From Neoechinorhynchus agilis (lineage: Eukaryota > Animalia > Acanthocephala), in contig CM121342.1 in the NCBI GenBank assembly GCA_051530055.1, positions 3,781,489 through 3,845,488 of the forward strand: 64,000 bases of DNA, given 5' to 3'. This document shows positions 55,370-55,740 of the stretch, one piece after another. The notes beneath the pieces are model-generated. The model did not search any database. It was not told the origin of the DNA and saw only the letters and a list, made by a program, of their open reading frames with translations. Every line of letters begins with the position of its first letter. Positions within the stretch are counted from its first letter, which is position 1. The translations under genes were made by a program, and so were the position numbers.

Positions 55370-55740
55370 CACTAAAGCTACAGTCCATTGCTTCGACCTT
55401 CGGGGTGACTCGGTGCCGGTCCCAAGCCCGGACAAATGGGGAGGGTTGTCGTCAGGAAGGGTATTCGGCCGTAAAATCTTGAGCCAAAAATACCTCCGAT
55501 CGATCGGGCTAGGGCGTTCCCTTCACGCGAGAAAAAGTATCCAGGGTTACCGGATCAACGACGGGTCCGGCTAAAGAAGCGAGTCGCTTTCAAAATACGA
55601 ATCTACACTCTGAACGTAGATTCAATGACCGGGGGGGGAAGCAGAGAAGTGGCCGATTTGTTGAGGAGGAGAAAAATCGAAATTATTCTCGTCCCGGAAA
55701 TTAGGTGGAAAGGAGGGAAGGCTAGAGAATTAGGCGACAA
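55370..55740 (+). mobile_element. 5' end of an RTE-clade LINE (UTR + start of APE endonuclease), 3'-truncated
   Basis: KIRIYTLNVDSMTGGGSREVADLLRRRKIEIILVPEIRWKGGKARELG corresponds to the RTE pattern RxGTLNVGTMTGKxRExADxMxRRKxDIxCxQETRWKGxKAR. Confidence 0.85.
55377..55450 (+). ncRNA. Twister ribozyme motif (type P1 with P3 hairpin)
   Basis: GCCGG-TCCCAAGC-CCGG-ACAAATGGG-GA-GGG matches the twister core; TCCATT/AATGGG can form P2, GC/GC T2, CCC/GGG T1; P3 carries a cUUCGg loop. Confidence 0.8.

Follow-up and report, generated by a model that had tools for sequence, protein, structure and literature searches.

The 64,000-nucleotide stretch of the Neoechinorhynchus agilis genome analysed here (the window) carries, at 55382/55397–55739, what is very probably the dead, 3′-deleted front end of a member of a twister-headed, RTE-type non-LTR retrotransposon family of about 3 kb. 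The catalytic core of this copy reads as intact (L4, GAGGG, P4 and P3). Its cleavage-site region has been lost or altered and its coding region lost, and the copy is therefore a non-functional relic with no evident function of its own. The features discussed below are the following, with P1 to P4 denoting helices and T1 and T2 the pseudoknots.

55382–55739 (+): RTE-type 5′-terminal remnant of an element of about 2,961 bp, from blastn against other copies (77–85% identity)
55382–55449 (+): relic of a twister (type P1) ribozyme; 34.3 bits with RF03160 (at 55385–55449), 59.6 bits with the family covariance model R1
55382–55398 (+): ambiguous 5′ end, either a mutated N|AA-P2-GC plus an insertion, or flank followed directly by a 5′-truncated copy beginning at element nt 8
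55400–55413 (+): P3 hairpin, 55400–04 with 55409–13, GNRA loop GUGA at 55405–08, from the pair counts of the family alignment A1
55415–55431 (+): P4 (55416–19 with 55428–31) and L4 (UCCCAAGC, 55420–27), the latter carrying strands of T1 (CCC) and T2 (GC)
55432–55449 (+): 3′ core, comprising an ACAAA linker, the P2 3′ strand UGGG (55437–40), GAGGG (55441–45) and the P1 3′ strand UUGU (UUGG in the family)
55625–55739 (+): remnant of the N-terminus of an APE-type endonuclease ORF, ATG at 55625, from translation, homology and PF03372 in the longer copies L065 and L062

The twister core and its family in the genome

The core named in the original prediction can be read directly in the window: GCCGG (55415–19), the L4 octamer (55420–27) and CCGG (55428–31) are followed by a 9-nt spacer (55432–40), GA (55441–42) and GGG (55443–45). 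The conserved L4 loop, GUCCCAAGC, is exact at 55419–27 and is closed by P4. P2 and both pseudoknots can form as had been proposed, with UCCAUU (55384–89) facing AAUGGG (55435–40) in P2, CCC (55421–23) facing GGG (55443–45) in T1, and GC (55390–91) facing GC (55426–27) in T2. The UUCG-capped P3 of the same prediction has to be replaced, since alignment of the family, with the pair substitutions seen in it, gives a GNRA-capped P3 at 55400–04/55409–13; the basal pair of this helix is A-U in the family and U55399/U55414 in the window copy.

The predicted Rfam match exists, at 55385–55449, with E values of 4.6e-6 on a 251-nt segment (55300–55550) and 2e-4 genome-wide, but its score lies below the RF03160 (twister-P1) gathering score of 67.2 bits, and the match is seen only in E-value mode. 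A gathering-threshold Rfam scan of the whole window returned no twister; its sole match above threshold was a tRNA gene at 29015–29086 (+), with 65.2 bits. HDV-like Rfam families had no match in the window. R1, a covariance model derived from 26 further copies of the family in the N. agilis genome, gives the site an E value of 3.6e-16, and the resemblance to twister is thus more than chance. Minimum free energy folding of 55370–55460 was no better than that of shuffled sequence (z = +1.41), and the nested twister fold has an energy of −13.5 kcal/mol as against −20.6 kcal/mol for the MFE structure; because pseudoknots are ignored in this calculation, the comparison is not diagnostic.

The genome searched comprises 46,219,100 bases in 102 contigs; the published assembly is described as 102 contigs and 46.2 Mbp, with an N50 of 16.4 Mbp and three major contigs (PMC12690905). 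It contains at least 61 RF03160 matches, the best of which score 60.4 and 59.0 bits, with E values down to 6e-12. None of the copies in the genome reaches the gathering score, and P1 and P3 account for most of the deficit. A BLAST search with window 55340–55780 gave at least 45 matches at 65–92% identity, which span only query positions of about 58–400, that is, window 55397–55739.

An endonuclease-coding region lies 80–700 nt downstream, on the same strand, in 24 of the 30 best twister matches. The amino-acid identities of the endonuclease regions behind these 24 matches range from 26 to 100%, and several diverged lineages therefore share the twister-endonuclease arrangement. The longer copies L065 and L062 encode PF03372 (Exo_endo_phos) and then PF00078 (RVT_1). 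None of the copies examined in the N. agilis genome is intact: all frames are broken, the longest being about 250–380 aa.

The nearest named homologues of the endonuclease, at 42–52% identity, are annotated as ‘craniofacial development protein 2(-like)’ in insects, crustaceans and fish, a name that we take to be the usual annotation of RTE/BovB-derived endonuclease domains; unnamed proteins of nematodes and Hydra fall within the same range of identity. A single ORF has an N-terminal APE-type endonuclease followed by the reverse transcriptase, without an ORF1, for which an element of 2,961 bp with a leader of about 285 nt has no room. The 3′ UTR is short and closes with short tandem repeats rather than poly(A), and the target-site duplications are variable. 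The family appears to be of RTE type, a placement in the RTE clade drawn from architecture and the names of endonuclease homologues rather than from a reverse-transcriptase phylogeny.

Some matches depart from the common arrangement. In six of the 30 best twister matches (L039, L041, L043, L044, L034 and L053), the 1.5 kb downstream contains no endonuclease-coding region; several BLAST matches (about 99 nt) take in only the first 100 nt or so of the element. Such fragments of the 5′ leader are the reverse of what non-LTR elements usually show, namely truncation at the 5′ end, and the window copy (element nt 8–396) belongs to this group. A second type of twister, of 55 nt, without P3 and with P2 as CUCC/GGAG as in Schistosoma, is found in L053 and L055 (C2:7368298–7368352 and C2:11595050–11595104). 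A weak endonuclease match (26% identity) lies about 680 nt downstream of L055, which suggests that this locus may represent a distantly related RTE lineage whose twister is minimal. Similar short twister matches are clustered at C1:4587606–4589672.

As aligned by Infernal, the best copies of the family are in perfect register with the twister consensus and read N-AA-CCCA-GCC ... GCCGGUCCCAAGCCCGG-AUAAA-UGGG-GAGGG-UUGG. Pairing was counted in A1, an alignment of 26 copies. The proportion of paired cells is 90% in P2, 96% in T2, 93% in P3, 97% in P4 and 91% in T1, and the GAGGG directly after the P2 3′ strand is nearly invariant. A compensatory change is seen in P2, which is CUCC/GGAG in L053 and L055 and CCCA/UGGG in most of the copies. 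The 5–6 bp P3 hairpin, which has GNRA loops (GUGA, GAAA and GUAA), exchanges G-U, G-C and A-U at four pairs between subfamilies. The close relationship of the copies keeps the covariation modest.

No conserved P1 helix encloses the ribozyme in these copies, the 5′ strand being unrelated flank. The original prediction had drawn P1 in the window copy as GCUAC/GUUGU; the first of these strands lies outside the element, and P1 as drawn is wrong. Pairing of the flank with UUGG amounts to 53.8% of cells. As UUGG has only wobble-capable bases, any flank pairs with it at about 50% per position; the observed figure is that expected of such a strand against random sequence, so there is no selection on P1. 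The same P1 3′ strand (A1 columns 66–69) is common to the N. agilis family and the Perere-3 twisters of Schistosoma (PMC8501958). A wobble-only strand may be a way of tolerating arbitrary insertion sites.

Element ends and the twister scissile bond

Comparison of L062, L063, L064 and L067 defines a full element of about 2,961 bp whose copies have a common 3′ end, ...AAAGAAATGTTGTTG(TTG). Individual copies end in ...ATGTTGTTG(TTG), and next to this lie target-site duplications of 11–15 bp whose sequences are unrelated. In all four full-length copies the duplication abuts AA, with its 5′ copy directly before AACCC; it is ACTAAATGGCGATCG in L062 and TTCTGTAAATT in L063, and slightly decayed in L064 and L067.

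The same boundary is seen in 25 independent insertions with unrelated upstream flanks, where conservation steps from at most 0.2 bits at position −1 to 1.4–2.2 bits from +1 onwards. A1 is A in 24 of the 25 insertions and A2 in all of them, while position −1 is T in nine, G in eight, C in five and A in three. About 17–18 of 24 independent loci start at (A)ACCCAGC in a set that was selected by BLAST and is thus independent of the covariance model. The conservation step and the duplications abutting AA place the start of genomic copies at the canonical twister scissile bond, which is the check that had been proposed; together with the endonuclease and reverse transcriptase domains that follow, they also uphold the proposal that an RTE-type family here uses a 5′ twister.

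A smaller group, about a fifth of the independent copies (L003, L019, L023, L024 and L026), shows clustered 5′ truncation at element nt 8–10, possibly joined by the window copy at 55397. Truncation falls immediately 3′ of both the P2 5′ strand and the L2 GC. Stalling of the reverse transcriptase at the folded ribozyme, or joining by microhomology, can be offered as guesses at its origin.

That the motif in the window is a chance resemblance, unrelated to ribozymes or to a retrotransposon 5′ end, has next to no probability. The sub-threshold Rfam score and an MFE no better than that of shuffles (see above) are what such a resemblance would give, but it leaves unexplained the related matches spread through a 46-Mb genome, helices and pseudoknots that are conserved with pair substitutions, and copies that lie at a fixed place with a 5′ terminus set by target-site duplications; a homologous arrangement with demonstrated catalysis has, moreover, been published (PMC8501958). 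The genome-wide matches, the register with the consensus, the duplications, the pairing and the conservation step refute it.

These observations are consistent with the following pathway. The first 65 nt or so of the element would constitute a type-P1 twister, followed by the single ORF (APE endonuclease and reverse transcriptase) and a TTG-repeat tail. The element would be transcribed within a longer read-through transcript of the host, because no promoter sequence lies upstream of its first base. In this RNA the twister would fold through P2, the GNRA-capped P3, P4 and the pseudoknots T1 and T2, while the landing-site flank would supply the 5′ strand of P1, paired to the wobble-only UUGG. 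A cut between the last nucleotide of the flank and A1 of the AA, as predicted from the sequence, would free an RNA starting exactly at A1, which would then be copied into a new site by target-primed reverse transcription. Full-length copies made in this way would be expected to begin at AA right after the target-site duplication, which is where they are found to begin. Catalysis by the N. agilis twisters is a step that we infer from their sequence and from the positions of the genomic 5′ ends.

Relation to other ribozyme-headed retrotransposons

In Schistosoma mansoni, twister T-variants have been described at the head of Perere-3, an element of the RTE clade (Liu et al. 2021, Nucleic Acids Res, PMC8501958). 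These variants cleave in vitro, in reporter constructs and in vivo, and cleavage lets the downstream ORF be translated (PMC8501958). In Perere-3 the target-site duplications abut AA, the duplication supplies the P1 5′ strand and the 3′ end is a short repeat; P1 of the T-variants is likewise reported as non-conserved, and cleavage without P1 has been reported (PMC8501958). Schistosoma variants with zero or one A at the cleavage site are inactive in vitro (PMC8501958).

The N. agilis family closely resembles Perere-3. In both, a type-P1 twister makes up the first 65 nt or so of an APE+RT element with a single ORF, the AA of the cleavage site directly follows the target-site duplication, and the P1 5′ strand comes from the flank or the duplication. 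L4, GAGGG and the P1 3′ strand UUGG are identical, both elements end in a short tandem repeat and not in poly(A), and decayed variants with fewer than two As occur in both. The differences begin with the host, which belongs to the phylum Acanthocephala rather than to the Platyhelminthes. P2 is CCCA/UGGG in the main N. agilis subfamilies; a single minor one has the Schistosoma form, CUCC/GGAG. P3 is a GNRA-capped hairpin of 5–6 bp as against a stem of 8–12 bp in Perere-3; the 3′ repeat is TTG rather than GTAA; and the copy number is tens to low hundreds rather than thousands. Unlike Perere-3, the N. agilis copies examined are all broken and are known from sequence alone.

Two other systems are relevant here. 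Self-cleaving HDV-like ribozymes occupy the 5′ end of various non-LTR elements, R2, RTE and L1Tc among them, where a role in translating uncapped RNA has been proposed (PMC8501958). The N. agilis family shares with them co-transcription with upstream host sequence and a putative self-cleavage site at the element's first nucleotide; the HDV-like ribozymes are nevertheless an unrelated class, folded as a nested double pseudoknot and cleaving at their own 5′ edge. With the canonical twister-P1 of RF03160 (Roth et al. 2014) the family has in common the conserved loop nucleotides, P2, P4, the optional P3, T1 and T2, all in the same order. The difference lies in P1, which is not conserved in N. agilis, its 5′ strand being arbitrary flank, and the scores therefore stay below the gathering threshold, at 60.4 at most.

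The original suggestion that a twister-headed RTE element was possibly unreported does not hold for the arrangement itself, which is that of Perere-3 (PMC8501958). It appears to stand for the host: no papers on twisters in Acanthocephala were found in the searchable literature. As the arrangement is already published for blood flukes, N. agilis provides a new example and not a new mechanism. The processing of the 5′ end of RTE RNA, the only experimentally supported role of twisters, is thereby extended from flatworms to a second phylum, and in Acanthocephala too, as judged by ends defined by target-site duplications, the scissile bond marks the start of the element. For annotation, dozens of sub-threshold twister matches in the genome are explained and the family obtains a precise 5′ boundary.

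Several acanthocephalan RTE lineages, with endonucleases 26–80% identical, keep a twister head with the same UUGG as in the fluke Perere-3. We consider that there is an even chance that the partnership of twister and RTE element is ancient and no peculiarity of Schistosoma. If so, the twister would serve one RTE sub-clade throughout Spiralia as a general 5′-processing module, or would have spread by horizontal transfer among parasites, and a large share of the ‘orphan’ eukaryotic twisters would be accounted for.

The window copy and its surroundings

Secure homology of the window copy to other copies begins only at 55397/98, both by BLAST and in the covariance models, and against a full-length copy extends over 55397–55738, that is, element nt 8–396, at 77% identity and with two internal deletions of about 23 nt each. 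What precedes this point can be read in two ways, between which the odds are close to even. On the full-length reading, A55382-G-UCCAUU-GC is a mutated start of the element, followed by an insertion of 7–8 nt at 55392–98 that resembles a duplication of CTTCG. The alternative, to which we give somewhat less than an even chance, is that the copy was inserted already 5′-truncated at about element nt 8 and never had a cleavage site or a P2 5′ strand, in which case A55382, UCCAUU and GC are coincidental flank.

Besides the late onset of homology, truncation is favoured by the alignment of the family model R1, which is ungapped and places GCTTCGAC (55390–97) where the family has AACCCAGC, with only two identities over the first eight nucleotides. 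Five of the 24 independent copies begin at nt 8–10 (see above), and the other 52 nt of the ribozyme are free of indels, so that two insertions within 16 nt would be unusual. On the other side, no more than 1.6% of 15-nt stretches from this genome contain the arrangement that would then be fortuitous (A-N, a complement of 4–6 bp ending next to GAGGG, and GC). The window copy also has other indels, namely the two 23-nt deletions, and CTTCGAC-CTTCGGG resembles a 7-nt tandem duplication.

Self-cleavage by the window copy is unlikely under either reading, because truncation removes the cleavage site whereas the full-length reading leaves a single A: the cleavage-site sequence is C-A-G in the gapped reading, and N-A-A is absent from the ungapped model alignment. 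It is improbable, in particular, that the copy has kept its full 5′ end and can still cleave at C55381/A55382. The core nucleotides 3′ of P3 are all intact, P2 (6 bp), T1, T2, P3 and P4 are all formable, and the predicted cleavage site would match the family 5′ end. Against this, A2 is G, and Schistosoma variants left, like this copy, with no more than one A were not cleaved in vitro (PMC8501958); 7–8 nt are inserted between L2 and P3, with U-U at the base of P3; the Rfam match scores only 34.3 bits and leaves UAA unaligned; and a competing nested fold, the MFE structure, is favoured by 7 kcal/mol. The identity to other copies (77–85%) also makes the window copy old.

As to the coding remnant, the predicted endonuclease N-terminus is present, but the distance of about 140 nt given for it is not, the ATG at 55625 lying 175 nt after 55450. 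Endonuclease homology ends at 55738/39, leaving about 38 codons, and the reading frame stops at 55760. The 3′ part was probably lost through a later deletion. A homology search found no further pieces of the element elsewhere in the 64,000-nt window. No direct repeat of at least 7 nt exact, or of at least 9 nt with one mismatch, flanks the fragment, whose 5′ end cannot therefore be fixed by a target-site duplication.

About 1 kb downstream of the remnant, on the same strand, are exons of a gene for a Src-type non-receptor tyrosine kinase (56741–58869, +), with an SH3 domain at 56741–57127 and a kinase domain within 57870–58866; given this position and strand, the remnant may sit in the upstream intron or promoter region of the kinase gene. 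A 199-bp tandem array (58866–60270; 7.1 copies, 98% identity) starts at the stop codon of the same gene, so that the 3′ end or UTR of the gene has been duplicated. Further satellite-like tandem arrays in the window lie at 5114–6697, 14284–16125, 19846–22171, 49814–53484 and 62863–63993, with periods of 280, 282, 352, 121 (30 copies) and 315 bp, respectively. At 20–22 kb of the window, where the 352-bp array lies, the GC skew is strongly negative (−0.5).
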